Shown piece after piece: positions 3,179 through 41,965 of a stretch of 64,000 nt of DNA (the stretch's first letter is position 1; each line of letters opens with the position of its first letter). This stretch comes from Caecitellus pseudoparvulus (taxonomy: Eukaryota; Protista; Bigyra: Bicosoecida). The translations under genes were made by a program, and so were the position numbers. Location of the stretch: positions 116,454-180,453 of the forward strand of contig CBFFRQ010000049.1 of the NCBI GenBank assembly GCA_965644315.1. Direction: 5' to 3'. The notes under the pieces were generated by a model that was not told where the DNA came from, ran no database searches, and was given only the letters and a program-made list of their open reading frames with translations.

Positions 3179-5018
3179 TCACACTTCATCCCAAAGGTGC
3201 TCATTCTCTGCTGTGAGGGCTGCAGCCGCGTCTTTTACGGCGTCCCCCACTTCACCTTCTATGGAGCCATCTTCCAAGATGGCCTTCAAGCAGCTGGCGA
3301 TGTCTGCCTGCCGGTACACGGCCCCGCCCGCCCCGGCTAAATCCAGCCTGCGGCTACCCAGCAAAGCCTTCAGAAGCAACAGGTACTCCACACGCAGGTG
3401 ACTCTCGGGCCCGAGATCAACCAGCTCTCTCAGGCAAATGTCAGCAATGACACGCACATCAGCGCCCATCAGGACGCCCGCCGTGCTGGGGCGTTGCAGG
3501 AGATGGCACAACAGCTGCACAGCTGTTGACAGGCTTGTTTCCGGCACCCGCACGTCATCTTCACCACCAAAGTCTGCCCTGTTACTAAGCACGGCAAGTG
3601 CTCCATCGATCAAATTCTGGCCGCGCGCGTCTCCCACTGCTGCCGCCAAGATTACGTCAAAGTCGCTGCTCTGCAAGCTCAGCAGCGCTGCCAGTGCGTC
3701 CACCCACGCGATTCGAATGGGCACCGTCCAAGGCACGACAGCTGCTGCCTCCAGCAGAACAGCAATACAAGCACACTGAGTCTCCACTGCCAGTGTGGCA
3801 CTAGACTGCGATATTTGCTGCAGAATGGTGGCCAGGAACATCAGCCAGGTGGCGGCTGAATGTGCGTCCACCCCAGGCGACGTCCCTGGAACGGCACTTT
3901 TCACCTCGGCCCCCCCGAGCCTTGGCGGCCAGCAAACTGTACATGGAGCAAACTTGGCACCTGTGATGGCATTCCACAGACCACTGCTCGATGCTGCGAT
4001 GGCATCGTCCACCTCCCATCCCCAGCGCCCATCCCAGCAACCGCTAAGCACCTCTGGCTCCACCTGTCCCAGCAGGTACAGAAATTGTGCTGTTCGAGTG
4101 CACAGAAGGGGCGGGGCCGTCACTTGCCAAAGACTGAGCAAGAGCCGTGGGAGGGCAAAGTCGTCTCGAGCGGCGGCGGCCTGCCACTCCTCATCTTCCC
4201 CAACAGCAGATGCCAGCTCCACGCCTGCTGCCACAGCTCGCGTCAGCGCTGATACGTTGCCACCACCTGTTTGCAGCGCCCCTAAGCCATGCAAGATGTC
4301 GTCACTGTCTGGTAGCCCAGTGGCTCGCAGGGCTTCCCACACCCCCTCCTCCTCGGCAATACTGCAGGCTTCCTCCACAAGCTCCTCACACTCAAGCGTC
4401 GCTTCCCGCTCTGCTTGGCTCACAACGCCTTCCGGCTTGGACCAGGACGTGGCACCTGTCACTGTGTGTACGTAAAAGACATCGCCCTTCCCTGTGCCCC
4501 TGCTCTCAGTGTGCCGCTCCACCCAGGAGCCCCCTGAAGCTCCAGATGAAGGGCCCAAAGTGCAAGGCACCACGTCCGTGTCGTGCCACTGCTGAAACGC
4601 TGCGGGGAGCGATGTGGGGAAGGAGGCGATCATGGCCTCCAAAGCAGGGTCTTCCACTGACTCGTGCAGCACGAGGTGGGCTGCTGCATGAGCTGGCGAG
4701 GCCGCAAGACCACCAGCGCCAGCAGCTTGAGCTGCAGGCTCAGCTGCCAGCGACTCGATTGCTGCTTGCTCTTCCTCATGGGCCTCTTCATCCTCAGGTC
4801 GGAGGAAGTCTTCATCTTCCTTGTCGAAGAGGGGCACGTCTTCCTCATTCAGGCCGTCGGGCGGATCCCAGGAAGTTTCTTGACTTTCCCTGCGAGGGCA
4901 AGGTGGAAGGTGGCGGAACTTGATCCCCGTCGACCACGCCGAGCACGGTTCCGCACACGTTGTAGAAATAGGTCGCAGAGCCGTCACCCGGGACGCAACG
5001 TCGCCAATATGTCTCCAT
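3179..5018 (-). CDS. Protein with two WW domains and a C-terminal SPIN90/Ldb17 (WISH/DIP/SPIN90)-like helical domain; intron ~4890..4956
   Basis: Splicing from ATG 5018 gives METYWRRCVPGDGSATYFYNVESQETSWDPP (WW1). WW2 is SWVERH...FYVHTVTGATSWSKP. The C-terminal DVRVIADICLRELVDLGPESHLRVEYLLLLKALL resembles the SPIN90/Ldb17 signature. Confidence 0.7.
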
Positions 5019-23590: not shown

Positions 23591-26500
23591 GTGCGCCCGA
23601 ACCCACACACTCCCTACCTCGCCTGCAGCTACTCTGTGGAGAATCTGCGGAAGCGAGAACACATGCGGTATCATCCTGAAATTCTGGGCCTACTCGATCA
23701 GTGGTTTTCAGCTGCGGGGGAGAAAAGCCGGAGTCATGGTGACGTGGTCTGGCAGGACATGTACAAAGCCATGCACCAGCGCCTGAGCAGCATTCTGGTG
23801 TCCAGCACTCTCTCTGCAGCAGAGAAGCTGCACCTGTTTGCGCGTGACTGGTTCATTGATTCCAAGGGGCGCCCTGAGCGTTATTTCCTGTCCCGGCGGC
23901 AGTTCTGTGACGCCATCTACGTCATGGTGGACCTTTGGGCAGACGGCATTGAGCGCAGCAAATACGCACGGTTCCTTCGTGGCCTGCTCAGACATGTCCT
24001 CGACGTAGCAAGAATCGTCAAAGCAAAGCGAAAAGCCGGGAAGATCGACCCCAACGACGTGGACGGTGCTGCCGTTTGGGGGCGAGTGAGGGCAGCTTGG
24101 CAGCATGGCGGGGCAGCAGCCCTTGCAGCTTTTTTGAAAGGAGTAAAAAGCAAGAACATTGTGAGCGGATCTGTAGCCGTTCAGCCATCAGCTCGTGAAG
24201 GCGCAGAAGCGTCTTTGCGCCCAGGGTCGCAGGACGCCAGCCCGGAGGACGAGGACCGGATGGCGCAAGTCGCGTCAGGGCACTTGCAGGAGCTGTCGGC
24301 GGCCGGCTTTGCTGTCGGCGACTCCCACTCTGATGCAGATAGCGTGTCAAGCGTCCGTTCAGCGAACAATTTCAGCAGGGTGTCGCACCGCCGGGAGCTG
24401 AGTCGAGATGGGGCTGTGCTGCCCATGGCAGTGTCGCTCGAAATGCTCTTGGGCAGCGCCAAAGTGCCAGCTGTTGCGTCGCCCAGTCGTCGCCAGCGTC
24501 GGGAAGAGACTTCCGAGGACGCGTTTCCGTTGCGAGTTGGCGATACGCCGAAGGTCCTTCCCCCCTCCCATGGCCCGCACCAAGCAGGCTCTCTGCGCGC
24601 TTCCAAACCTGCAGGGTCCCGCCCGAGCGCACCCGCTCCATTGCCGCGTCGCTCCAGGCGAAGTGTCAACATGCTATCTTCATTCGGAAGCCAGCAGCCA
24701 CGAAGTCAAGGCTTCACCCCTTTGCTTGATGATGACGAGTCAGGCGCGGCCAGGGCGAGGAACGCTCACTCTTTCATTATTCCCCGCTGGCAGAGTGGCG
24801 GCAAGGTCATCCCAGGCGAAGATTCGACGGTACACGTGCTGCCTGGGGGACAGGGGCAGCATGGGCCAGTTGAAGGAGACTCGGACTCCGCTCCTGAGCA
24901 GGGACCCGTGCGTGGCGAATCCGGGGCAACTTCAAAGGCAAGAACTGAGAGCGCGAGAGAAGAGTCCCAAGGAGGCTCACTTGGATCCCAACACCTTCTT
25001 GTAGATTCCAAGGACAGGGGCAGCTCAGCCACCAGCAGGCTTGCGCCTTCGCCTGTCAATCGAGAAGTCTCCCCTTCGGGAACGCGGAGGCGGCTGATTC
25101 ATGGAAAGCGTGCCATGTCGCGGGCTTCCACTGCAACCTCCGCCTCTGCATCCTCCACAGCTGACGCGCAGCCCATGATGGGATCTCCATCTCAAGATCT
25201 CTTTGCTGGCGTTGATGATGAGCAGGCTGCTAGTCAAGCAGTGGCTTCCCGCCGCAAACCGCGCTTTCGAGGCAGATTCCGCGGCACGAAAGCCGTGGAA
25301 TTGGCTGACGGCGGGCAATCTGAGGAGGCTGAGGAAGACACAGCCCTTCCATCCGAGGAAAACGGCGCAGTTGCAACGCCTCATGCAGTGCAATATGACG
25401 AACATGGGGCCCGGATTCGGAACTTGGCGAGCCAAGACGCTGTGCGCACTCGTGACATGGGCGGCTTCGGCGGCGAGGTCCCGTCTGACGATGATATTCT
25501 CCTAGCTAGTAGTAGTGGCAGCAGCAGCTCTAGTGTTGGGTCAGACGGCTCGGACTTTGCGCAGCAGGCTCGACAAGCAGCACTGCACGGCATTCGATCA
25601 GGCGGCAAGCGTGGGCATCATCGGCGCACGAGCAGTGTGGAGGCCGTGCAGGCAGCCATTGCCCGAGCTGCCAATGAGTCTGGATGGTCGGGCCTCACTC
25701 GTGGCTTTGAAGGCTGGGGTGGGGATGCAGGGGGTGAAGCAGTCGAGTGGGACTTCGAGCAGCATGAGGGACATGCCGGGGCTGCTGGCTCCCTCCTCGC
25801 GGGTGCGACGCATTCGAGGAAGGCCAGCGCGACCCTCCCCTCCAGTCCCCTCCACGCATCGCCTTCACCGTCCAAAGATGACACCCGTGAGTCGTTTCTG
25901 GTTCGCATGAAGCGTCAGCAGGCTCGATTGCAGGAGAAAGCGAGGCGCAGGGCGGCTGCTGCCAAGCACTCTGACAGCGCGGGGGCACTCGTCCGCCGCA
26001 CCAGCCGTGCTGCGATGCTCCCGACCTCCCACGGGTCTGTCATGGACAAACTGCTAAATGGTGATGCTCCTGACTCTGGGAGCGTTCCAGCTGCATCAAC
26101 GGGGGGCTCCTTGCCCTGGTGGGCATCACGAGAGGCACTAGAAGATGAAGCGTTGGCCGTCGGCGCCGTTGGAGGCAGCGCTGAAGCGCGGCGAAGGGTT
26201 TATAGCCGCGGAGGTAGGCGAGTGCGAGATCTTGAGGGTCCAGATGCCGTCGTCATCCCTTCGTACATCGTGCAGCCGGACATTCCAGACGCGGTGTCAG
26301 TCCTGTCAGGGGTGAGCAGCGACGATGAGGTAGGCGAAGCAGTGGAGGCACTGGGCGCCCTCCCCCGGTCCATTGCTGTGCAATCCCTTTCACCAGCAGC
26401 ATCTGCACTTGCCCTGGCTCTGCAGCACGAGGGAGTGCCTCTGCCGGCAGCAGATATGAAGCGCCTCACAACCATCGCGCTGGGCTTGACAGCTGGAGGG

Positions 26501-29038: not shown

Positions 29039-30895
29039 GCTTTGGTGATCCGCTGGCTCTGCTTCAGTAGACAAGGTGGATCGGTGTGAGATAATCTGTG
29101 GACCAAGGGCAGCCTCCTCGGCCAACTCCACCTGGGTTCGCTTCGTTGACAACCGGGATCGCAGAGCGCTCGGCGCGCGCTCGAGGCTGGAGATGACGTT
29201 GGAAACCTTCTCTTTGTTGTCATCCTTTGATAGCCAGGTGTCCAGTTGGGTCCCTACTTGATTCACGCAGGTGGAAACGAGCACTTGAAACGACCCAAGC
29301 ACAGACAAGGCGAGCAATGCAGCAGTTAAAACCGTCGGCTGACGCCGAACTAGGTAGGTGCACGATGCAGGCGCACACTTTTCGAAGTACCGGCTGTAGT
29401 CCGTCTTGAAGAAGTCTGGGTTGATCTTGATGGCATTTGAACCATCATCCGAGAAGAAGTCAAGGTTGCTGACGATGGGGCCGCCCAGTGGGGACGTTGG
29501 CAACGCAGCAGAGTCACCCACGGTGGAGACACCGCTCCGCAGCGGAAGGCCAAACTGCTGAGCAACGCTGGAGTTCAGCTCCACGAAGCCTTGGTATAAC
29601 GACTGCTGGAGGGGGCAGCCGAGGCCTCTGGGGCCGTAGAGAGGGCCGTACTTGAACATGTACTGTGGCAAACTGCGAACGAACTGCTGCTGGTCTGGGC
29701 ACAGCACCCGAAAGGGCTGCGATGGGAGGCCTGCTGGCAGGGGCTGGCCCGGGAAGAGTTCGTTGTGGAGGTGGAACGGGTCGAACCGGGCCTCAAAGGT
29801 GCAATTGCCTCGCGTCAGAGTGCTGTTGCAGTTGCAGCCAGGCGGGTTCGCCGTGCCTGGGACGAAACACACGTCCACTGCAGCAGTGATCCACTCATCG
29901 CCATAGGGAATGGGAATGGGGTTGTTCAGCGAGGTGCTCAGCCCGAGGGTCTGCTGGAAGGTATTGCTCTGCAGCATGAACCCAATAACGGCATCTTGCA
30001 CTGCCGTAGCTGCCGCAGCATCAAACTGCTCCACTGTGAGCAAGGAAAGGCCGAGGCTTGCAGACTGAATGCGCGGCTGCACGGCTGCCCACTGGAAGAA
30101 GAGGGTCTGGGCATACTTCGCCAAGACTGCTGCCAGCGTGGACAGACATTGCCGCACCAGATGTTCTGAGTGGGGCAAGAGGTGAGTTGTGTGGGCCAGC
30201 TCGCAGGTATCTTCGAAAGGGTTGGAGCCGTTGACTGCCTCTGCTCCAAACGCTTGCCCCGGTGCTGTCAACCCAAACAGGGTACGAAAGACGTTGTACT
30301 TGGGATCTGCGGCTCGTGGCAGATGTAGGGACACAGCCTTGCCCAGCCTGACAGGTTCTGATGAGGCACAACGGCATGTGGTGCCCAATTTCGGGGCGAC
30401 GTCTGGGGACCCGTCAAGCCCAAGGATGTACTGCCGGTAGCACTCGTAGCTGGTCAAGTGCGCTGGGCAGTGGATGTGCTCTTCAGCCGCACTCGCCGAT
30501 TCGGCAGCAGCTCGAGCTTCTGCTGAGGCATCTGAACTGAAGTACAGCGTCCCAGACACCGTGCGTTGCTGGGAAAGGATGACAAAGCCATATGCGACCA
30601 GCGCTGACAGCAGCAAAACGCCGAAACACATGGTCTTCCAGAAGCCAACTTGCACACGGTGCACATCCTCGACGTACACAGGTTCTCTGAACAGGTTCAC
30701 CGATCGCATCCACCAAATCCAGGGTGGGATGATGGCCTTGACCCTCGCCCGCACGCCGCCCACATTGGCGCCTCCTGCACCACTGTTGCGACCAGCCGCA
30801 GAGTCTGGCGTCGCTGGGCTCTGCGAGGCCATGGAGGGCGATGTCGCAACGGGGTTGATGACACTCCTTGAGGTGCTTCCCGATGAGCTGGCCAT
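29030..30895 (-). CDS. Uncharacterised membrane protein with two TM helices and a large Cys-rich loop (DEG/ENaC- or P2X-like topology)
   Basis: TM1 MCFGVLLLSALVAYGFVIL, a ~450-aa loop with many Cys and N-x-S/T sequons, then DYSRYFEKCAPASCTY and TM2 TVLTAALLALSVLGSFQVLV. Confidence 0.7.
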   Translation of the reverse strand: MASSSGSTSRSVINPVATSPSMASQSPATPDSAAGRNSGAGGANVGGVRARVKAIIPPWIWWMRSVNLFREPVYVEDVHRVQVGFWKTMCFGVLLLSALVAYGFVILSQQRTVSGTLYFSSDASAEARAAAESASAAEEHIHCPAHLTSYECYRQYILGLDGSPDVAPKLGTTCRCASSEPVRLGKAVSLHLPRAADPKYNVFRTLFGLTAPGQAFGAEAVNGSNPFEDTCELAHTTHLLPHSEHLVRQCLSTLAAVLAKYAQTLFFQWAAVQPRIQSASLGLSLLTVEQFDAAAATAVQDAVIGFMLQSNTFQQTLGLSTSLNNPIPIPYGDEWITAAVDVCFVPGTANPPGCNCNSTLTRGNCTFEARFDPFHLHNELFPGQPLPAGLPSQPFRVLCPDQQQFVRSLPQYMFKYGPLYGPRGLGCPLQQSLYQGFVELNSSVAQQFGLPLRSGVSTVGDSAALPTSPLGGPIVSNLDFFSDDGSNAIKINPDFFKTDYSRYFEKCAPASCTYLVRRQPTVLTAALLALSVLGSFQVLVSTCVNQVGTQLDTWLSKDDNKEKVSNVISSLERAPSALRSRLSTKRTQVELAEEAALGPQIISHRSTLSTEAEPADHQSSR

Positions 30896-31304
30896 CTTGA
30901 CTGCACCAGACGAGGAAGAGCAGGCGCCCGTGAGCCGACAACGGCTGCCCTCCACGCTCAGCAATTTCCGCACACCACGCCGCTACAAGCAGCAAGTGCG
31001 AAATGGATGTTGATGGTGGGGGCCTGGGCGCTGGCGGCCGCTGCTGCCACGTTGGTTTCATGGTAGGATGTTCATTTTGGTGTGCGGCAAAGAACTCTGG
31101 AAGGGCTTGCCAGCGCTCGCCGACAGGGCTCGGCGAAGCCTGGTCCATTTCAGGGGTCTATCCTGCCGACGCTGGCATGGAAGGCGGTCACAATCCCACG
31201 GCCGCCCGCATGAGCGAACTTCGTTATTCAATTCACCCTGTGGAGTGGGCCTTATATTTCCTGTGCACTCGGCTCAGCCGCGCACGCAGCCTTCGTGAAG
31301 CCAG

Positions 31305-31662
31305 GTCACCCTGGCGGGAGCGCCCACTAGTAATTTGCAAGTTCAAAGTGTTTTTTACTAAGTGAGAATCTTGTACTAGTGCGAAGACAATGGAAAAATA
31401 TCGTGCTAGTGTGAGCATGAGGGTCAGTGTGCACGCAGTCAGCTGTGCTAGTGTCAAGTCCGTGCTAGTGAAGTGCTTGAAAGCCGCAGAGGCGATGTGA
31501 AATACTAGTGTGCTTGGGGTTTGCCAAAACTGCACATCACCCTGTTCACTAGGGGTGGGTTGTGCGCTAGTGCGTCAGACCTGTCCAAAGCGTCGCTAGT
31601 GTGAGCGCGGTAGGCAGGATTCACGAGGGCCAGCTGTACTAGTGAGGTGAGCTGTACTAGTG
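31305..31662. repeat. Left imperfect TIR and subterminal CTAGTG array
   Basis: 11 CTAG between 31327 and 31660, 9 of them as CTAGTG. AGCTGTRCTAGTG occurs at 31441, 31632 and 31650. AGTGTTTTTTACTA-N6-AATCTTGTACTAGTG lies at 31347..31381. Confidence 0.85.
31307..31324 (+). repeat. 18-bp direct repeat, copy 1 (CACCCTGGCGGGAGCGCC)
   Basis: Identical to 38157..38174 and immediately followed by CACTA at 31325. Confidence 0.95.
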
Positions 31663-32183
31663 CAGCAGCAAGCTCGAGCTGACGTTGTGGGTGGAGCAGA
31701 CCTCTCTCGTACACACACCAATAAACACAATGTTGGTGCAGTCTTCGACTCTGTGTGCCATCTTCATCGTTGTCTCACAACTACCACGGCTTTTGTTTGG
31801 ACCATGATCATGCTATCGGGCTAGGAAGAGCCCTGCGTCGACTGGTGTGGCGTTTCGCTTCTAACGGGTTCTCCGCGCCTCTCCCATGCGGAACCGGGTA
31901 GGACTCCCACCAGGTCCCCGGCCCCTGGAAAACCTACCATGACTTATGCTTAGGTTTGGCCGGCCCTGGCGCCTTGTGGTGGGCTTGTGCTAGCGGTGTT
32001 GGACGGCTTCGCCGTGATGCAAGTGCCTGGCGCACGCAGCTTCGCAACGTTCGCTGCCACAAGACAGGCTCGGTGCATTGGCATGGATGAAATGTGAGGG
32101 AGGCCTGATGAAAGGTGGTCCATCCGTGCTGCAGCATGGAACTTCTCTTGTCAGCCAGCGTGTGGCGCAAAGCTCTCACAAGC

Positions 32184-35100
32184 TCAGTGCTGCCGCGCTG
32201 TGATGGTCGGCAGCCAGAAGAGAACCGGGTCACCATCCGGCTCCTCTGTGTAAGTGTGCCCCTCCACTACTGTGGGGTGAACCACCGCTGGAGCGATGAG
32301 AACACTGCCACCCACTGCGTTGGCTGGGGGGGCGACATCCAGCGGGTTCACGTACTTCCATCCAGCTATACATGCGTGGGCCTCGTCTGGGTGCAAGAAT
32401 GTCCCCAACAACACCACCTCCTCAATCGAGGCATCTTTCTCATGGTCCTGGGGTGCATCACCAACAAGAGCAGCGACAGCACGGAACAACCCACTCCCAA
32501 TGGCTGGCGCGGCTGCCCCTTGTTGCTGCTCCTCACGCACAACCACGAAAGCGGGGAAGCACAGCGTCGACGTGTTCCCGCCTGGGAAGCACATCAAGAC
32601 GGTGCTGCACAGCCGTACTTGTCCCACCATCCTATCTCCAGTACCAACTGTGCTGGAGACGCTCTGCAGCATGGTATTCACGTCCCCTAGAGGTAAGACC
32701 CCATCCAGAGCCATTCCGGCCACGCAGGGCTCCAAGGCTGCGCGGATTGTGCGGGCCAGCCCACTGTCTTCCCTGTCGAGCAGTTGCCAGACAGTGATTG
32801 GTGATCGGAGGACCTCGCGAGCCTTTGTTACAGGGGACAGGTACGGCATCTCTGGCAGCGGGCTGCCTTGCAGCAGGCAAGCAAGCTCTTCCCCAGCCAC
32901 CTGTGATGAGGCGCTCGTCACCCATGCCTCGCTTACCAGCATGTCTCGGCGGATGGATGCGTACGTCAACAACTTTGGCATATTGGCTGCCCCAAACGCA
33001 GAGTTGCACAGCTTCCACAGGCGGATGAGAGCGGGGTGCCGGCCCTCCCCGTTGTCAGTGTCCAGCGCTGCAACTACCCCAAAGCCTGCCACAGCTGCAG
33101 GAAGGTGCTGTATCTCGTGGGCCTTGGGATAGTGTGTGCTGGTGTCGCATGAAAAACTACTCCCTCCGGACTTGGAGGCTGCCTCTTGCACAAGCTCAGC
33201 GATCAGCTCCTGCGTGCCAACCATCCGAGCTAGCCAAACCTGCATGCCAAGCAGGGCCGCTTCGTCCAGTGTGTCTCGCACATACATGTATGCCTGTACT
33301 ACCAGTGTACAGTGACACAGCACTTGCACCATGGTGTGCAGCTGGGGATCAGCAATAATGTCTTGGTTGTGTCCGACGATGAGTGGCAACCACTGCGCCC
33401 TGCTAACGCGCTCGGCCGACCGCATCATACCCCCAGCATTCTGCCGCCATGGCAGTGCTCTTCCTCCATCAAGCCGAGTTCCGTTTATGGTCACACCCTT
33501 GACGGCCTCCCATCGGCTTTTAAGGAGTGCTTCCCTCGCAGCAAGTCCTGGACCGACAGTCATCGCAGCTAGGACAAACCTTTCGCAGCGGGCCGCTACA
33601 GCCCCCGTGTCGGCCGCGTGGATGGGATCTGGAGGCCTCAGGAAGCACAGCCGGGTTCCTAGTACCTTCTCAGCCGCTTCCCACGCGCTGAGTGCCCCTC
33701 TGCGATGTCCAGTGGCCGCGGCTGCCTCATCGCTGCCGGCTCCCTCTCCCCCTACCCTGAGCTGACAGTGTTTCAGCGATGCCAGCGAGGACAGCTGTGG
33801 ACCGGGGACACAGCGACACTGCACGCACCGCCGATGGAGCAAGTCAAACTGATCCCACGCTTCCACCATGTCCGCCGACAGCTGGATAATGCAAGGCATC
33901 ATCTGCACATACTCCACCAGCTGCCTCGGGCGACTGTGTGCGGTCACCTGTGACACCCTGTACCCAGCAGACTTCAGTGCAAGGGACTGCTCTGGAGTCA
34001 CCTCCTTGGGAATGCCGCCCATCTTCTGGATCGCGAGCAAGGGTTGGAGGACAAGGCTCAAAACCATGGACTGTGCTGCTTGTGCTGTGGCCGCAGCCGA
34101 AGTCAGGCCCGCCTCTCGCAGCACGTTGTCATCCTTGGGAAGTCTCTTTGGGCTCGGGGGCATGGCGAGCAATGTTGCCCTGTGCGCCTTGCGCATGGAG
34201 GCAGCATCCCCCGCAAGCGGCCAGAGCATCATGGGATACAATGCATGCTTCCCAGCCCCATCAGGGTGCACTTCGTCCATGAAAATGACCAGCGGCATGG
34301 ATAGCGCCCCGCGCGCCTTGGCGCGTTCAGCCGCATTGCGCAGGAAGACGCCATTGGATGGATGGCTCCATGTCTGTCCTGCCGCCCCAGCTTCGGATGG
34401 ACGGAACTGTTTTTCAACGCTGACCGGATCTCTGAGGCTACAATGGCCAACCTCGAGGGGGGCAGGGAGCGAGATCTCCCCACCGCCCGGTAGCTGCAAG
34501 GCGTCCTTCATGCGTCTCCAATGCGCTGTCGCCAGCCCGTCTGCAAAGTGGAACTTTTCTTTCACCTTCATGGCAGCGCTATTGTGTGCTGGCAGCTTAA
34601 GTGTTGATGGGAACCACTCTGGACTGGCGACGCCACCTCCTCGGTGAGGGGCGAAGTCCTCCAGTGGTACTTCGGCAGCCGTGCGTATAAGCACGTCCCA
34701 CAGTGGCATGGAAGGCACTTCGCACTGTCCACCTGCCAGTCCCTTGGGTAAAGGTACAGTGATGGAGATCGGGGAGGGGGTTCCTTCCGCGGCGATCTCC
34801 AGCAGCTTGTCGATGCTTGGCACCATGGGACACTGTGGAGCTGTGCGATGCTCCTGACGAAGAAGCACCTCAGAAGTCTTGATCGTCTTGTTGTGCTCCT
34901 TGATGATCTCCGTCAGCACACTCTTGCTGGCGTTGAAGCGCAGCAGACACTTGAGTATGGTCCGGCCCATGCCCCCTCCAATGCCTCCACCACTACCCGC
35001 ACTCTGTGCTGACAGCCGATCAGCGTGCGCTATGGCTCTGGCGACCAGCTCGGTGTGGCGTGGAGGGATGTGCTTTGCTGCTCCGGGTTGCTTTCGTGGT

Positions 35101-35447
35101 CCCCCGGTTGGCTGGGGAAGAGCTGGCTGTGCCATCTGGGCTTGGACGGTGGCGGCGACAGGCTCAACAACCAAAGCAAAGGGTGACCCCCCCCCTTGTG
35201 AGTGCCCGGCTGCCATGCGCTTGGCACCCACATCATGTTGAGGCCGCGCCGCGGCTTGCTGGTGGCGCTTGCGTTCAAGGCGAGTAGTTCGAGCTTCTGA
35301 AGCCAGCCGCTCCTGAACCTCACGAAGCCGTTGGACTTGTGCTTCTTTGTACGCCTTCATCCGCCTGCGACGACAATGGACCATATGGCCGCCAAGAGCT
35401 CGTTCGTCGTCGAACTCCTTGTTGCAGAGCTTGCAGCGGGCGCTCAT
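32184..35447 (-). CDS. Plavaka-type (CACTA/Mirage-related) DDE transposase with an N-terminal zinc finger, ~1087 aa, uninterrupted
   Basis: Zn finger CKLCNKEF...GGHMVHC, then PLVIFMDEV...LYPMML (D1), LSADMVE...RCVQC (D2 + CxxC), DPIHAADTG (DxxH) and YPKAHEIQHL...FG...DTDNGEGRH (E). This motif order matches Plavaka/CACTA transposases. Confidence 0.82.
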   Translation of the reverse strand: MSARCKLCNKEFDDERALGGHMVHCRRRRMKAYKEAQVQRLREVQERLASEARTTRLERKRHQQAAARPQHDVGAKRMAAGHSQGGGSPFALVVEPVAATVQAQMAQPALPQPTGGPRKQPGAAKHIPPRHTELVARAIAHADRLSAQSAGSGGGIGGGMGRTILKCLLRFNASKSVLTEIIKEHNKTIKTSEVLLRQEHRTAPQCPMVPSIDKLLEIAAEGTPSPISITVPLPKGLAGGQCEVPSMPLWDVLIRTAAEVPLEDFAPHRGGGVASPEWFPSTLKLPAHNSAAMKVKEKFHFADGLATAHWRRMKDALQLPGGGEISLPAPLEVGHCSLRDPVSVEKQFRPSEAGAAGQTWSHPSNGVFLRNAAERAKARGALSMPLVIFMDEVHPDGAGKHALYPMMLWPLAGDAASMRKAHRATLLAMPPSPKRLPKDDNVLREAGLTSAAATAQAAQSMVLSLVLQPLLAIQKMGGIPKEVTPEQSLALKSAGYRVSQVTAHSRPRQLVEYVQMMPCIIQLSADMVEAWDQFDLLHRRCVQCRCVPGPQLSSLASLKHCQLRVGGEGAGSDEAAAATGHRRGALSAWEAAEKVLGTRLCFLRPPDPIHAADTGAVAARCERFVLAAMTVGPGLAAREALLKSRWEAVKGVTINGTRLDGGRALPWRQNAGGMMRSAERVSRAQWLPLIVGHNQDIIADPQLHTMVQVLCHCTLVVQAYMYVRDTLDEAALLGMQVWLARMVGTQELIAELVQEAASKSGGSSFSCDTSTHYPKAHEIQHLPAAVAGFGVVAALDTDNGEGRHPALIRLWKLCNSAFGAANMPKLLTYASIRRDMLVSEAWVTSASSQVAGEELACLLQGSPLPEMPYLSPVTKAREVLRSPITVWQLLDREDSGLARTIRAALEPCVAGMALDGVLPLGDVNTMLQSVSSTVGTGDRMVGQVRLCSTVLMCFPGGNTSTLCFPAFVVVREEQQQGAAAPAIGSGLFRAVAALVGDAPQDHEKDASIEEVVLLGTFLHPDEAHACIAGWKYVNPLDVAPPANAVGGSVLIAPAVVHPTVVEGHTYTEEPDGDPVLFWLPTITARQH

Positions 35448-35738
35448 TCTGAGTCTTCTGTAGCGTGAGGGCACCGGCGGAGTTCCGTTGCTTGCGTTGG
35501 CGCCCCTACCGTACGTACGCAGCGCGCACAGCGAGGCGAGAACGCAACACAATGCCAGGCAGCCGTAGCATCTTCATGTTGGTCGTTGGTGTGTGTTGGG
35601 CTGTGGGCATTGAAGGCGCCTTGCAACCTCGTCCAGTGCATTTCCAGTCTGTCTCGACATTCCACCGTTGCATGTACTTTCAGACCCACCAAGTCCTCAG
35701 ATACGCTTTTTGTTGCACACCCACCCCAACCATTCACC

Positions 35739-37947
35739 ATGTCACTTCACTTTGATGAAATGGGCTCTGACAGCGAGGATGCAGGGGACACAACGGCAAG
35801 TGTCGTGGCTTCGTTAAGTATCGCCACACCCCTCGAGGCTGCACACCTCTTCAACCGCAGCACGGCTGCCAAAGCTGTGATGGCCGGGAAACGTCGACGG
35901 GATGTTGTGCTTTGGGCATCTCACCCTGGCAACTGCACTGGGTCCGTCGTTGGGGTGCCTGACGTTCTGGAGGGTAATGGTACGTACTGGTTCGCGCCAC
36001 AGGATCGACGCCCGTGCAGCGCCTCCCCACCCCACCCTAGCATCATGTGCAGGTGATGCCAACGCACTCACATGCCTTGATGACAGGGAGCTATTCGGCA
36101 CAGCTAGGGGCGGTTCTAGTGCTGCCATTGCGGCTCGTACGTACCTGCTCTGCAGTCACGGTAGCCACAGCGTTCTAACGGCCACTGCTAAGCTTCGTTG
36201 GACCGGACCAATCCCGCTCCCCTTCCCCAGAAGCCTTCGCCGCAAATACAATGGCGAGCTGCAGACCGATCAAGGCACCAAGGCCGCTTGACCTTGCTGA
36301 GAAGCTTGAATCGGCGAAGGAGCTGCTTGAGTCTATTGGCACGCCCAGCGAGAAACGTCTCATCGAGTTGTTGAACGAGGTTTTCGTTTGGAGCGCAAAC
36401 ACCATGTCCCTTGTCCAACTCTCACTTGGCCTGGGGCAATTCAGAACTTCACAGGTAGTGGGTATGGTTGGTCCACTAACGCAGAAGCAGGAAGCAAAGA
36501 ACTCCAAGAAACGTGGAGCTCGTGGGGGAGACCAGCTGGGTGAACTCTTAGAGCCCGTGGGGGGCGCAGACTCAATCCCATGGCCCCGAAAGTTCAGGGC
36601 AGAAGCCCGCCGCATCGTGGTCGACCTCATCCTCGAGAACCCTTCGTTCATCTTGGCAGACCCCGAGAACCTGGTAGACACACTACGAGCAGCCATCGAG
36701 GCAGTTGAGGCCGAGCAGAACGTTGCCCGAGAGGTGGCTGGAGCCACAGAGGAAGGGGGAGATGGGGTGCCGGTTGGAGCACAAGCCACGAGCCGGGCTC
36801 TAGACGACCCTAGGTTCTCAGCACCGTGGAAGTTCAAATGCCTCGAAAACGTGATAGCAGCAGCGAGGAAGGTTTCGATACAGAAGGAGCTTACCGAGCG
36901 GGGTGGCGTGCTTTGCGCGCTGAAGGACATGGCGAAGAGCAGCAAGAGTGCGAGTTACGCCGGGCTGAAGGCCGCCATGAGCAATGTCAGGAGCAAGTGC
37001 CGCGCCAAAATCACGAGGTGAGTGCCCAGAGGACTCCTTCCGAGTCCGTGGAGCGCAGCATAGCAGACTTCTGAGCATTGCGCAGTTCGGAATGCCTAGG
37101 AAAGTTCGAACCGTGGCACGAGATGCAGAGGAAGTACGAGCCAGTCCATGAGAAGTGCACCGGAGGTGCAAGCATTCAGCTTGACCACGACCCAGCCTTC
37201 TTCGAGGTGTCTTCCGAGGACCCTGAGTACCGCCACAGTTGGGTGCCCAAGGTAAGTATGTGTGTGAGTCTAGACCCGCACAGGTGATGCTGGGCCCGAA
37301 TGCTCCTTTCTCATGCATTCTCTTTGTGCCACAGGCTGAGAGGGGCAAAAAAAGGGCTGATCGATCAAGGCACCGCCTGTGCTTGCAGGAAGTCAACGTT
37401 GCCCGTGAGGCCATCGTCAATCATACCACCATCAAGGCTGTTTTCAAACGCCGGGGATCCGAGGACTCCAGTAGCGGCCCCCGTTTCGACCCCAGCTTCA
37501 GGCGTTTGGAAGCGGCGCTCAGTGGCCCAGAAGATGTGGCAAAAGGGGCCAGGATTGTCTTACGATGGATGGAGGCTGCGTACAACGTTGCTGTCGACTG
37601 CTTGAACGTGAAGAACAAGCAGTGGGTGACTGATTGTGGGGACCTGAGCAGCCTGACCGTTGACGACAAGGTGCGTGCGTGCTGTATGTTGGCCATGCTG
37701 TGGACGTCGTTACGCATGAAGCACCACGTACAGACGGAGATGGCCGTGCTTACGCACAAAATTGTGTCCAGGATAACCTGACATGCCCTCCCTCGACCTG
37801 GCGCCGAGCCATCCGTGCTGAAGCTACTTCATTGTTCTTCAGGTTGTCAAGGTGTGTTTCAATGCAATCGATTCACGGCAGACCGAACTTGTTGCGCTAG
37901 CGAAGAATGTACTACTAGGAAAAATGTCCAGCTGGGCGGTGCGCTAG
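35739..37947 (+). CDS. Transposon-borne spliced orphan gene, ~570 aa; exons 35739-35979, 36053-36136, 36231-37017, 37086-37251, 37335-37670 and tentatively 37843-37947 (alternative stop at 37781)
   Basis: Canonical donors (GTACGT, GTACGT, GTGAGT, GTAAGT, GTGCGT) and CAG acceptors join separate ORF-track fragments into one reading frame. No domain recognised. Confidence 0.65.
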
Positions 37948-38154
37948 TAGTGCGCTGGGCGGCCCTCCGTACTAGTAGCGCCTCGCCCAGCGAAATTTAC
38001 TAGTACCGAGCACAACCACCCCCGCTCACTAGTGTGCCTCTGGGCATGCATTCTCACTAGCATTGCAGTCGCCCCACTCACTTCACTAGCGCAAAATTGA
38101 GCTCTAGAAAAAAAACACTCTTCAAACTCTCCTTACAGAGCGCGCTCAGGTGAC
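37897..38154. repeat. Right subterminal CTAG/CACTAG array and imperfect TIR
   Basis: 9 CTAG between 37897 and 38107, three as TCACTAG. The reverse complement of 38084..38119 reads AGTGTTTTTTTTCTA-N6-AATTTTGCGCTAGTG, matching the left end. Confidence 0.8.
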
Positions 38155-38156
38155 GG

Positions 38157-38174
38157 CACCCTGGCGGGAGCGCC
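38157..38174 (+). repeat. 18-bp direct repeat, copy 2 (CACCCTGGCGGGAGCGCC)
   Basis: Identical to 31307..31324. Confidence 0.95.
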
Positions 38175-38220
38175 GAGCCCTCCGCTGCCTCTCGCTGACT
38201 CTTGCACGCCTTTGCTGAAC

Positions 38221-41200
38221 ATGGAGACCAGTCAGGCAGCTGGCTGTTGTGGCGGGTGCTGTGGTGCAGGGAAGCAAGACGAGTACACAGCCATGGACAG
38301 CACCGCTGAAGAAGGCTCAAAGTGCTGTGGTGGCTGCTGCGGGCCATCCCCCGCAGCACAGGTGAACATCGTCTCCCGCTTTCAACGGGCAGTGGCTCGG
38401 CTACAGGCAGTCATGAACTTCGCTGGTCGTGCCAGTGGTGGCGATAGTGCCTTTTACGTCGTGGCCAAGCTGTATGCTCATGAGGTGAGGGGCTGCTGGC
38501 AGGGCGCATGTCCCCGCAGTTTCCGCCCTGTGCTCGTGCTAGCTTCCCACGCCATTGAGCTCCATGCCGCTTGTGCGCAGAATGTGGACGCGGAGTTGTA
38601 TGACTACCACGATAGATTTCCGAACCAGTTCCGCTTCTACGCCCCCCAGGTGCGTTTTCTCAACATCCACTGCTGCCTGCTGGGTTCCATGTGTGGCTCG
38701 CGCACCAGGCAGGAGGCACGCACGCCGCCCGCCAGGCAAGCCTTCTCTGTCACCCCCCTCCCCTCTCCCTGACACCCCACCAGCTCATGAACGTCTTGCT
38801 GCATGGCGGCATGGCCGACTCTCAACTCCTGGCGACCTTCCTGCTGGGCCAGGCAGAGAAGTGCGTTTGGCCGGGAAGCGCTTGCGGTGCAGCGGCCACT
38901 GCACCGCCCCCGCCCCTCACAGGTCCCTCCTCTTCGCGCACCGCTTGCACTGGTTCCTGAACTCATATGCTGTGCGCACTGCGCCAGCCTTCACCAGCCC
39001 CCTGGTGTCCTCTGTCGCCCAGCAGGTGCGCCCAGCAGCCCCTGGCACAGGTGACCCCCTGGCTGACTTCTATGGCAACCCGTGCCCACTCACGCGCGCC
39101 ATCACCGCCACAGGGCGCACAGCCGCCCGGCGCTTCATGGACTCAGGCCCTGGGCGCTTGGTCTTGGCCGGCACGGCGGGGGCGGGCAAGTCCAGCATGC
39201 AGCTGGTGGCCAGCCCGACACCCGACGCAGCCGCCGCTGCTGGCGCCCAGGACACCCTGGCCTCCCAGGCACTGCTGTCAGACAGCAAGGGCACGACGCC
39301 AGTGCCGCCCCCCGCCAGTGACGCGTACCATGCCCTGGAGGGTAACGGCAGTGAGGAGGAGCAGCCGGTGACGCTGGTGGCGGCAGCGCTGCCTGCCCGC
39401 ATCGCGCCACGTTCCGCCACTGCCCGCCCCGCAGCCTGGTACGGCGCAAACCTCATGTTCTGGGATGAATTCCTGCAGCTCTCACGGCGGCTACGGGAGA
39501 CAGAGGCCGACCAGCGCAACCCCACCCTGCGCAGTCGCTTGGCGGGCATCTCCGCGGCATACCTTGGAGCCCATGTGGGGGACAGAGTGCAGGCGACGCT
39601 ATACGTGCCCGTGGGTGACCCCCATAACCGCATCGTGGCGGTGCACCCCGAGCACAGCTTCTGCTTCAAGACCAAGGAGCGCGTGCCGTTCATGGCAGTG
39701 CTGGAGGTGGTGGGGCTCAGCCCCGTCCTCTTCGGACACACCAAGGCCGCCGCCCGCCGCGCAAGGGTGGGCGCCTCCAACCTCGACGCGTACCTGGCTG
39801 GGCAGCAAACACATGCGCTGCACACGACAGCGGCATACGCGTCGGCTGCCCGGGCCCGGCGGCAGCGCAGGGGCCGCAAGGCCGCACCAGCACCAGCCCA
39901 CCCACCGCCCTCTGCTCCGGAGGCGCACGGGGCCTCCCGCTTCGCTGCGTACACGTGGGGCCTGGGGGACAGCGAGAGCAGCAGTGAGGAAGACGGCGAG
40001 GGCAAGCGCGACCGGGGGGAGTCGGGCAACTTCGCAGACATGTTTGCTGACGCCTCGGAGCGTATGCGGGAGTTGGGGCGAGCTGCGGGCGCCGCCGCAA
40101 CCGCCGCGTTCCAGGGCCTGCACATGCGTGCCCAGAGCGCGACGGGGGCGGCGGCGGAGGGCGCGAAGCGGCGGCGCAAGCGCAGTGCCCGGCAAGGCTC
40201 CGTGGCTGAAGCACTGCCTGACGGCGGTGCGTCGCCAACCAGCAGTGACGGCGGGGGCACCAGTGCCTCCGAGCGCGGGCATGTCGAGTTGATTTCGCCC
40301 CCTCGCCCGGCAGGAGGGAGCGAGGGGGCACGCGGCGGCGCCTGGGGCGACGCCAAGGGTACAGAGGCATCCCCTACACGCCCCATCCTGCCGCCCCGTG
40401 GCATCCGGCCCAAGCGCAGGGGCGGCGCAGCGCGCAAGCAGGCGCCACTCGCGGCGCAGCAGAGCCTGCTCCCCCCCACTCAGCACGACAAGCCGCCAGG
40501 CACCGGGCAGGGGCGGACCCTGAAGGCGCCTTCCCGAGCTCGAGCTGCGCTGGACCACAGCACGCGGTATGGCGTGGGCAGCAGTGTCGACCGTGCCAGC
40601 GCACCGCCGGACCTGGAGGAGGGGGACGGCGACTCCGTCTTCTCAGACAGCGACGGGCAGAACACGCCACCTGCGGCACAGGCTGTGCATGCAGTGGATG
40701 CCCACCTGCACTCGCCAGGCGCGCAGCGGCCGGGAGCACACCCGCTGGGCATGTGGCAGCACGGGCGTGGCGATGGTGTCGGAGCAGGCGCGTCCCATGC
40801 TGCGCCCACCTCCAGCTCGGCGGGGGAAACGCGCGCCTTGAAGGCGGACGCGCCCAGCCGGCGCCCTGCTGCTCTGCGCTCCCCCCCGCCCGGCATGACA
40901 GACTTCGAGGCCAATGGCGGCGTGTCAGACATCGACGAGGCCATCGCTGCCGGCGTGGGGGCAAGGCGAGGGGGTGGTGGTGCAGCTGCTGCAGATAGCC
41001 ACAGACCCCGTGGGGCGTCTGAGGTGGGGTCTGTGGTGGAGGAGGGGGGCGGGGAGGAGGGGCAGGTGGTGAACGTCGCCTTCACGCAGCGGTGGAAGGA
41101 CAAGGCCGAGGAGGTGCGGGCCAGCTCCCCCTACGGACACCACGAAGGCTGGCGCCTTGTGCCCGTCATCATCAAGTCCCACGACGACTTGCGCCAGGAG

Positions 41201-41965
41201 CAGTTCACATCCCAGCTGCTGCAGCAGATGGCAGGCATTTGGAAGGCGGCAGGGGTGCCAGTGTGGCTGCGCCCGTACGACATTCTGGCCACAGACGAGG
41301 ACGGCGGCATCATCGAAGCCATCCCCGACACGGTCTCCTTGCACGCACTCAAGAACGGCGATGACTCCTTCACTGACTTGTCGGACTGGTTCACGCGGCA
41401 CTTCCGACGTGGGCGCCACGGCAGCAAGCGGGACTCCCTGGCTCGGCAGAACTTTGCCCGGAGCCTGGCTGGGTACAGCCTGGCTTGCTACCTGCTGCAG
41501 ATCAAGGACCGCCACAACGGCAACATCCTCCTGGATGCCAACGGGCACATCATCCACATCGACTTCGGGTTCCTGTTCACCTCCTCCCCTGGCGGCAACA
41601 TGAACTTTGAGGCGGCGCCGTTCAAGCTGACGGCAGACTTTGTCAGCGTGCTGGGGGGCAAGGACAGCAGGTTGTTCAGCTACTACCGGTCTCTCTGCAT
41701 TCGAGGCTTCATGGCCCTGCGCAAGGCAGCTCCCAAGCTGCTGCTCCTCGTCGAGATGACGCTGGCCGGCAACAGCCACCTGCCTTGTTTCCAGAAAGGC
41801 CCCGCAGCGGTCATGTCCGAGCTGAACAGCCGCTTCGCGCCACACCTCAACACAGACTCGCAGGTCGCTGACTTCATGAACGGCCTCATCAACAGCAGCG
41901 CCGAAGCCTTCTCGACGTCCATGTATGACACGTTCCAGTACCTGAGCTTGGGCATCCGCGCGTGA
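38221..41965 (+). CDS. PI4KB: Phosphatidylinositol 4-kinase type III beta (Pik1-like); several 5' introns
   Basis: FYAPQ and LFAHRLHWFL (LKU region), FKTKERVPF, IIKSHDDLRQE, YLLQIKDRHNGNILL, HIDFGF and FEAAPFKLT. Confidence 0.93.

Follow-up and report, generated by a model that had tools for sequence, protein, structure and literature searches.

An apparent 18-bp target duplication beside a Plavaka/CACTA-like transposon of a marine protist is a 2-bp duplication plus a 16-nt copy of the target

The locus analyzed here raises the question of how an insertion of about 6.85 kb, which resembles a CACTA-type transposon, came to be bracketed by a perfect direct repeat of 18 bp. It is located in a 64,000-nt stretch of Caecitellus pseudoparvulus DNA, hereafter called the window (C49:116454-180453, i.e. 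contig CBFFRQ010000049.1), which was taken from a 30.6-Mb assembly of 215 contigs of this marine eukaryote; the public sequencing runs that contain the window sequence include marine metagenomes. The 18-mer CACCCTGGCGGGAGCGCC is present at window positions 31307-31324 and 38157-38174 without a single mismatch, and no third match was found in the 64-kb window when up to two mismatches were allowed. Two matches were obtained in none of 100 dinucleotide-preserving shuffles. In the whole genome, three exact copies of the 18-mer were detected, two at the window locus and one on C123, which is an allelic contig of the window's right flank. The genome search revealed no other copy of the element that is adjoined by the 18-mer, and the flanks of those other copies are unrelated to it. 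As correctly read in the original prediction, the motif CACTAG begins at position 31325, directly after the left 18-mer, and the right end of the element does not finish in TAGTG; it reads ...GGTGACGG, and the sequence before the second 18-mer is ...GCGCTCAGGTGACGG. The repeat had been taken either for an unusually long target-site duplication (TSD) made by a different cleavage geometry, for a target resembling the element's own end or the remnant of a second left end, or for a repair footprint.

In order to define the true termini of the element, the window copy was compared with the other copies in the assembly. The first 376 bp after the left 18-mer are 100% identical at eight places, including the window locus, and 96% identical at one more; a related subfamily, designated B, shares about 76% identity, is about 3.4 kb long and has at least eight members. 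In all eight of the other family-A left ends, the 19-nt tip CCGTCACTGGAGGATGGCC precedes CACTAGTAATTT, and the flanks of these copies diverge only outside the tip. At the same position, the family-B left ends (8/8) carry CCGTCACTGGAAGTCGGCC. All right ends of both families finish in GTGACGG, and the right tip is identical in the seven family-A right ends that have flanking sequence (7/7) and conserved in family B. Because all right ends finish in this way and the left tip is conserved, the terminal inverted repeat (TIR) is CCGTCAC/GTGACGG, and the termini CCGTCAC...GTGACGG were observed in 16 left and 10 right ends. The motif CACTAG is internal, at element positions 20-25, and the proposed start of the element at CACTA proved to be wrong: the family's left terminus is 19 nt outside this point, and only the window copy lacks the 19-nt tip. 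Element contigs from four independent public runs start with CCGTCACTGGAGGATG followed by GCC CACTAG (loose ends at 31322). The weak inverted homology noticed earlier at the left 18-mer is partly real, since the family TIR contributes to it (the right tip on the other strand reads CCGTCACC), but its likeness to the target is at chance level.

The copies are very similar to each other. Across seven aligned copies only three substitutions and a handful of homopolymer-length changes were found, and this near-identity of at least eight copies of 6.85 kb indicates very recent transposition of the family. The window copy alone carries two of the three substitutions, one at 32711 (C instead of A, Ser948 to Ala) and one at 35522 (G instead of A); the six other copies differ only by homopolymer lengths and one single-nucleotide polymorphism (SNP). 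The run lengths that vary are those of C5, C9, G6 and A8 tracts (window positions 33748, 34208, 35187-35188, 36559 and 38107). This homopolymer variation looks like residual error of a long-read assembly, and indels in the repeats of this genome are not to be trusted.

The TSDs of the other copies were read from complete copies, with both ends on one contig. In family A these are CG (the copy on C102) and AT (C69), and in family B they are CA (C44), CA (C18) and CG (C13). Additionally, four orphan left ends, in contigs that stop inside the element, pair one to one with four orphan right ends through the dinucleotides TT, CA, GC and AT; we estimate the chance of such a perfect dinucleotide pairing at about 4e-4. 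The normal target duplication of the family is 2 bp, and at none of these other insertions (five complete copies and four paired ends) was an 18-bp duplication found beside intact termini. TSDs of 2 bp have been described for PlavakaA families, and of 2 or 3 bp for PlavakaB (PMC12730594).

Two further copies have altered tips. A 2-kb non-autonomous derivative (L064, G000:C18:1078957-1080965), 96% identical to the family at its left end and 84% at its right end, lacks the last 5 nt (GACGG) of the right tip and has kept an AT duplication; it is a second end-damaged copy. In a family-B copy (L010/L032, G000:C94:119766-123157) both tips are altered, the left to CCGCCAC and the right to GGCGGCGG, and no matching 2-bp duplication is present.

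With the family termini and TSD defined, the left junction of the window copy can be read base by base. The insertion point is ...GGT-CA-CCCTGG..., and the right flank begins CA-CCCTGGCGGGAGCGCC-GAGCCC. A normal insertion at this point would read ...GGT-CA-CCGTCACTGGAGGATGGCC-CACTAG, whereas the assembly reads ...GGT-CA-CCCTGGCGGGAGCGCC-CACTAG. The left copy of the normal 2-bp TSD, CA, occupies 31307-31308 on the forward strand (as do all features of this junction), and the right flank also begins with CA. It is followed at 31309-31324 by a 16-nt patch, CCCTGGCGGGAGCGCC, in place of the 19-nt tip, and this patch is identical in 16 of 16 positions to 38159-38174. The body of the Plavaka/CACTA-like transposon, without its left tip and with its two private SNPs, extends from 31325 to 38156 and closes with an intact right tip, CGCGCTCAGGTGACGG, at 38141-38156, whose terminal GTGACGG is the inverted partner of the lost CCGTCAC. 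The original target follows at 38157-38174, consisting of the CA of the TSD and the 16 nt that would have served as template or source of the left patch. The apparent 18-bp TSD is a 2-bp TSD (CA) plus 16 nt identical to those that follow the TSD beyond the element's right end. Patch and lost tip both begin with CC and end in GCC; the outer 14-19 nt of the tip are missing, and the unambiguous exchange amounts to 14 tip nucleotides lost and 11 foreign nucleotides gained, between the microhomologies CACC and GCC.

The state of the site without the element was assessed by comparing Logan contigs (assembled contigs, not raw reads) of four public runs with window positions 29800-32800. In run X3, a 10.3-kb contig consists of the left flank, a single 18-mer and then GAGCCCTCCGCTGCC..., which is the right flank; a 612-bp contig of run X6 also joins the left flank, one 18-mer and the right flank. 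Run X1, which matches the window best (only two differences over 3 kb), has a flank contig that passes from the left flank through the 18-mer and breaks off 12 nt beyond it. In all three runs the empty-site 18-mer directly follows ...GCCAGGT. Because these contigs join the flanks through one 18-mer, the unoccupied site is single-copy, and the occupied allele in the assembly has two. Removal of the insert together with one repeat copy leaves a natural empty site, as had been proposed. The position at which the X1 contig stops suggests that the 18-mer is entered, exactly at its first base, by a second path in which the preceding base differs, since 1 + 18 + 12 = 31, which is the Logan word length. 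This would fit the presence of the occupied right junction as well, in which case the insertion is probably polymorphic within the X1 sample.

Alternative versions of the flanks were sought in the assembly with probes of 0.6-1.5 kb. The right flank has two of them, on G000:C123:1-48567 and G000:C119:1-7042. Over 8.5 kb, C123 shows 110 mismatches and one gap against the right flank, an identity of 98.7%, and its end coincides exactly with the first base of the 18-mer; C119, the third version, shares 97-98% identity and begins 18.8 kb further to the right. No second version of the left flank was found with probes 30700-31324 and 25000-26500, and no allelic contigs were found in the genome for the canonical insertions on C102 and C69. 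Several haplotypes are thus present in the sample, and there is an abrupt change of sequence diversity at the insertion; this change could be a boundary of recombination or loss of heterozygosity, or it could reflect coincidental blocks of identity. Over 1.5 kb, X1 differs from the left flank at one position only, 30605, a CpG site at which the assembly has T (GCGC[T]GAC) and the contigs of X1, X3 and X6 have C. The T could mark a haplotype linked to the insertion; otherwise it is an error of the consensus.

We favour, with somewhat more confidence than doubt, an origin of the window junction by repair: a break at the left end would have been mended by a short stretch of templated synthesis followed by joining at a microhomology, and the copy would have been immobilised as a result. 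The element would first have inserted normally with a CA TSD, and its left end would later have been broken by transposase or by another nuclease. The flank end, ...GGTCACC, could then have paired through CACC with the empty homologous allele or with the element's own right flank, been extended by about 11-14 nt and been released, after which the 3-nt microhomology GCC would have allowed the extended end to be joined to the trimmed end of the element. Such a course would be synthesis-dependent end joining of the polymerase-theta type with a templated insert. Templated extension in trans by polymerase theta is known to give short duplications at repair junctions (PMC4912351). Features of a templated scar can be read at this junction in the assembly, namely a template match of 16/16, CACC and GCC at the borders and a loss of 14 tip nucleotides. 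Further support comes from the private SNPs, found only in the window copy, and from the second end-damaged copy on C18, whose incomplete right tip means that end damage happened at least once more. Moreover, the T at 30605, where empty-site contigs have C, suggests that the consensus near the junction follows the element-bearing and not the empty haplotype. With only one good end left, the window copy should no longer excise, and such a loss of excision fits the fact that it is the only copy with private substitutions.

It is important to mention that several results weigh against this origin. The junction GAGCGCC-CACTAG was not found in independent data, i.e. in the Logan contigs of public runs, which drop minority variants; in the X1 contigs, subject to the same loss of minority variants, only the empty junction and the canonical tip were seen. 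Exact-pattern scans of metagenomes with the left flank and with the element's left end were both blank, as were three exact-protein look-ups, with the transposase and with two open reading frames (ORFs) that span the left junction. An assembly chimera would yield the identical sequence, microhomologies included. Either the homologous allele or the right flank in cis may have been the template, and the lesion may have arisen at insertion or later.

The strongest rival explanation, possible although clearly less probable to us than a genuine repair junction, is that the assembly or its consensus is a chimera of the empty and the occupied alleles. In this case the insertion would be polymorphic in the sequenced sample, and its real occupied allele would have a 2-bp TSD next to a normal left tip. 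For roughly its last 18 nt, the shared left-flank edge would have been built from reads of the empty allele and connected to a repeat edge that begins about 19 nt within the element; polishing would have retained the join on the strength of the empty-allele reads. Several properties of the assembly suit this explanation. It derives from noisy long reads, as the copies differ almost only in homopolymer length; two to three versions of the right flank are present in the sample (C49, C123 at 98.7% and C119 at 97-98%), and run X1, the best match, contains the empty allele. In five contigs the sequence breaks off 8-21 nt inside the element's right tip, in three of these at exactly -16, and four contigs stop within 10 nt on either side of element position 3875; the stops inside the right tip indicate that the assembler places repeat boundaries inside the element by approximately the length of the missing tip. 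The patch junction, in turn, occurs in no independent contig. On the other hand, the join would have been made at only three shared bases, and ordinary overlap or de Bruijn steps do not make such joins. According to our scoring estimate, empty-allele reads would align on a normal junction only as far as about 31310, so that the patch is not expected to arise from ordinary polishing. Canonical junctions are found at the other eight family-A left ends, and the T at 30605, 700 bp away, does not follow the allele of the X1, X3 and X6 contigs that enter the empty site. C123, too, starts at the first base of the 18-mer and not after it, a position that speaks against displacement of a graph node on the empty haplotype. 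The earlier suggestion of a repair footprint is the one favoured by the evidence, with the chimera standing as its rival.

An aberrant one-ended integration, which we regard as improbable, would mean that 18 bp of the target were genuinely duplicated when the element inserted. An excised copy with a damaged left end would have been integrated by transposase at its right end only, the nicked target strand would have primed displacement synthesis of 18 nt, and host end joining would have attached the truncated left end via GCC. The product would be the same as that of the repair, with the right junction intact exactly at the TSD position, the left tip lost and the GCC microhomology at the join. 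However, this route is the longer one, with a second break in the target 18 nt away among its added steps; it gives no reason for the match of the first two duplicated bases to a normal 2-bp TSD plus the shared CC, and was seen at no other copy.

An unlikely variant of the repair, given about as little credence as one-ended integration, is microhomology-primed break-induced replication on the empty homologous chromosome after transposase had cut the left end. Replication would have been primed by the nibbled end of the element (...GCC) at the allelic GCC, 16 nt beyond the insertion point, and would have proceeded leftwards, so that a single event would account for the lost tip, the 18-bp duplication and a sharp change of heterozygosity at the junction. 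Such a contrast is present: the left flank has one version, and from the first base of the 18-mer onwards the right flank has two to three versions that are 1.3-3% apart. If true, the locus would show that in nature, here in a marine protist, loss of heterozygosity can start from a transposon end.

The remaining explanations can be dismissed briefly. It is very improbable, for the three readings taken jointly, that the 18-mer is att-like or terminal in nature, that it is left over from a second left end, or that the target was chosen for its likeness to the element's end: the three exact 18-mers all lie at the window locus or its allele and no core flanks every copy; the empty site has the 18-mer once and without element DNA; and in alignments with shuffled-position controls, 41-90% of random window segments score at least as high as the tips against the empty site, the stretches GTCAC, TGG and GCC common to target and tip being the only points in favour of an end-like target. 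A family TSD of about 18 bp made by unusual staggered cleavage is rejected with near certainty, for although the unoccupied site carries the 18-mer once, as a true 18-bp TSD would require (contigs of X1, X3 and X6), the other copies, which the original prediction had named as the test of a long TSD, duplicate 2 bp in all five complete copies and all four dinucleotide pairs, and the window copy, its sole support, lacks the terminus that all others have.

The 18-bp repeat is consequently no evidence for a new integration geometry, and the family makes 2-bp TSDs like other elements of the Plavaka and CACTA/EnSpm-Mirage-Chapaev(-Transib) (CMC) group. If the junction is real, the locus is a clean natural case of a false long TSD and illustrates that a templated patch can imitate a long TSD and immobilise a copy. 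For annotation, it is a warning that ends and TSDs deduced from a single copy can be off by the length of the lost tip, and that polymorphic insertions in multi-haplotype long-read assemblies need to be checked at the level of reads. The family itself is recently active, very divergent and represented by insertions that are polymorphic between strains, with almost no relatives in public protein data.

The internal structure of the window copy was also analyzed. A left subterminal array at 31325-31662 (forward strand) contains nine CTAGTG motifs in about 340 bp, and the right subterminal region at 37897-38140 (forward strand) contains CACTAG and ACTAG[TC] motifs that mirror it; half of the 24 CTAGTG occurrences in the window are in the two element ends, and only one is in the interior of about 6 kb. 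The putative transposase ORF lies on the reverse strand at 32184-35552 and is uninterrupted over 1122 codons from a TTG, its likely start being the ATG at 35447, which would give a protein of 1087 aa. Further ORFs without a Pfam match are found at 35739-37947. A weak C2H2 finger, at the N-terminus of the putative transposase, was all that Pfam scans detected in this protein and in the other ORFs. Five residues, D426, H812, H816, D833 and E836, are invariant among five relatives, in motifs of the type VFMDE, YPKAH...H and DTDxGE.

The classification of the putative transposase was attempted by several routes. The Pfam family Plavaka (PF18759) matched neither the protein nor a six-frame translation of the whole genome, and neither the transposase nor its best homologue obtained a match in a word-index protein search. 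An exhaustive search of 1.84 billion representative proteins yielded only six relatives with E <= 0.001, the best full-length homologue being P0002 (32% identity, phmmer E = 1.8e-32 to the query), which scores 22.7 bits against PF18759, below the cut-off of 26.3. In a search with language-model features (Atlas), a Plavaka score of 0.97 was obtained, and 15 of 30 matches fell in Plavaka clusters. A profile of the six homologues compared with PDB sequences found zinc fingers only, and an AlphaFold model of the core, built from a five-sequence alignment, was too poor to use (predicted local distance difference test, pLDDT, 45.5). P0002 and P0004 come from contigs of ENA metagenome assemblies and of a Logan run, and in the contigs of the distant relatives neither CCGTCAC termini nor clear TIRs were found. 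The transposase lineage is nearly unsampled. We read the element, on its sequence features, as a very divergent Plavaka/CMC-like cut-and-paste transposon with atypical termini, for which membership in Plavaka is not reached by the Pfam criterion.

Another copy of the element contains a 4.4-kb DNA transposon (L057:3999-8413, G000:C19) nested at element position 3871-3875, where it interrupts the transposase ORF of that copy. The nested transposon has perfect 16-nt TIRs (TAGGTCTCGTGAAACC), a 5-bp duplication, CTTGT, and an ORF of 736 aa with DDE_Tnp_4 (Harbinger-type) and SAP domains. Contigs C200, C27, C51 and C36 break within 20 nt of the element position of this nested insertion.

Within a divergent promoter, about 64 bp separate the right end of the window copy from the downstream ATG of a PI 4-kinase gene (window 38157-38221); the gene product has a PI3/PI4-kinase domain (Pfam E = 7e-39; window 38555-41965). 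The empty and the occupied alleles differ by 6.85 kb of promoter-proximal DNA and, as the insertion is in a divergent promoter, they may differ in expression.

Compared with known systems, the element resembles the Plavaka lineage and the CMC group in its 2-bp TSD, which is like that of PlavakaA and sometimes of PlavakaB, and which falls within the short TSDs reported for the group (2-3 bp, and 2-5 bp in the wider clade; PMC12730594). Dense, oriented subterminal repeat arrays and a large single-exon transposase are further points of likeness. It differs in its termini: none of the 16 left and 10 right ends has the 5'-CA..TG-3' form of Plavaka/CMC termini, and the ends read CCGTCAC...GTGACGG, not TGT..ACA, CATCA..TGATG or CACTA (PMC12730594). 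The host, a marine protist, is neither a fungus nor a red alga, unlike those of Plavaka. The left junction resembles the inserts made by polymerase theta and by synthesis-dependent end joining in being an 11-16-nt copy of nearby or allelic sequence, with microhomologies of 3-4 nt and the loss of a few nucleotides at the break. Unlike in such inserts, a template in cis would lie 6.85 kb away, which makes the allelic empty site the more natural template, and the event is deduced from a single junction. In maize Ac/Ds and Mutator and in the Drosophila P element, a copy can lose a terminus after a transposase-induced break and become immobile, with filler DNA at the junction. Filler DNA has also been described in Ds-like elements (PMC3260210). 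In contrast to those fractured copies, the filler in the window copy duplicates the target itself, and in this way it mimics a long TSD.

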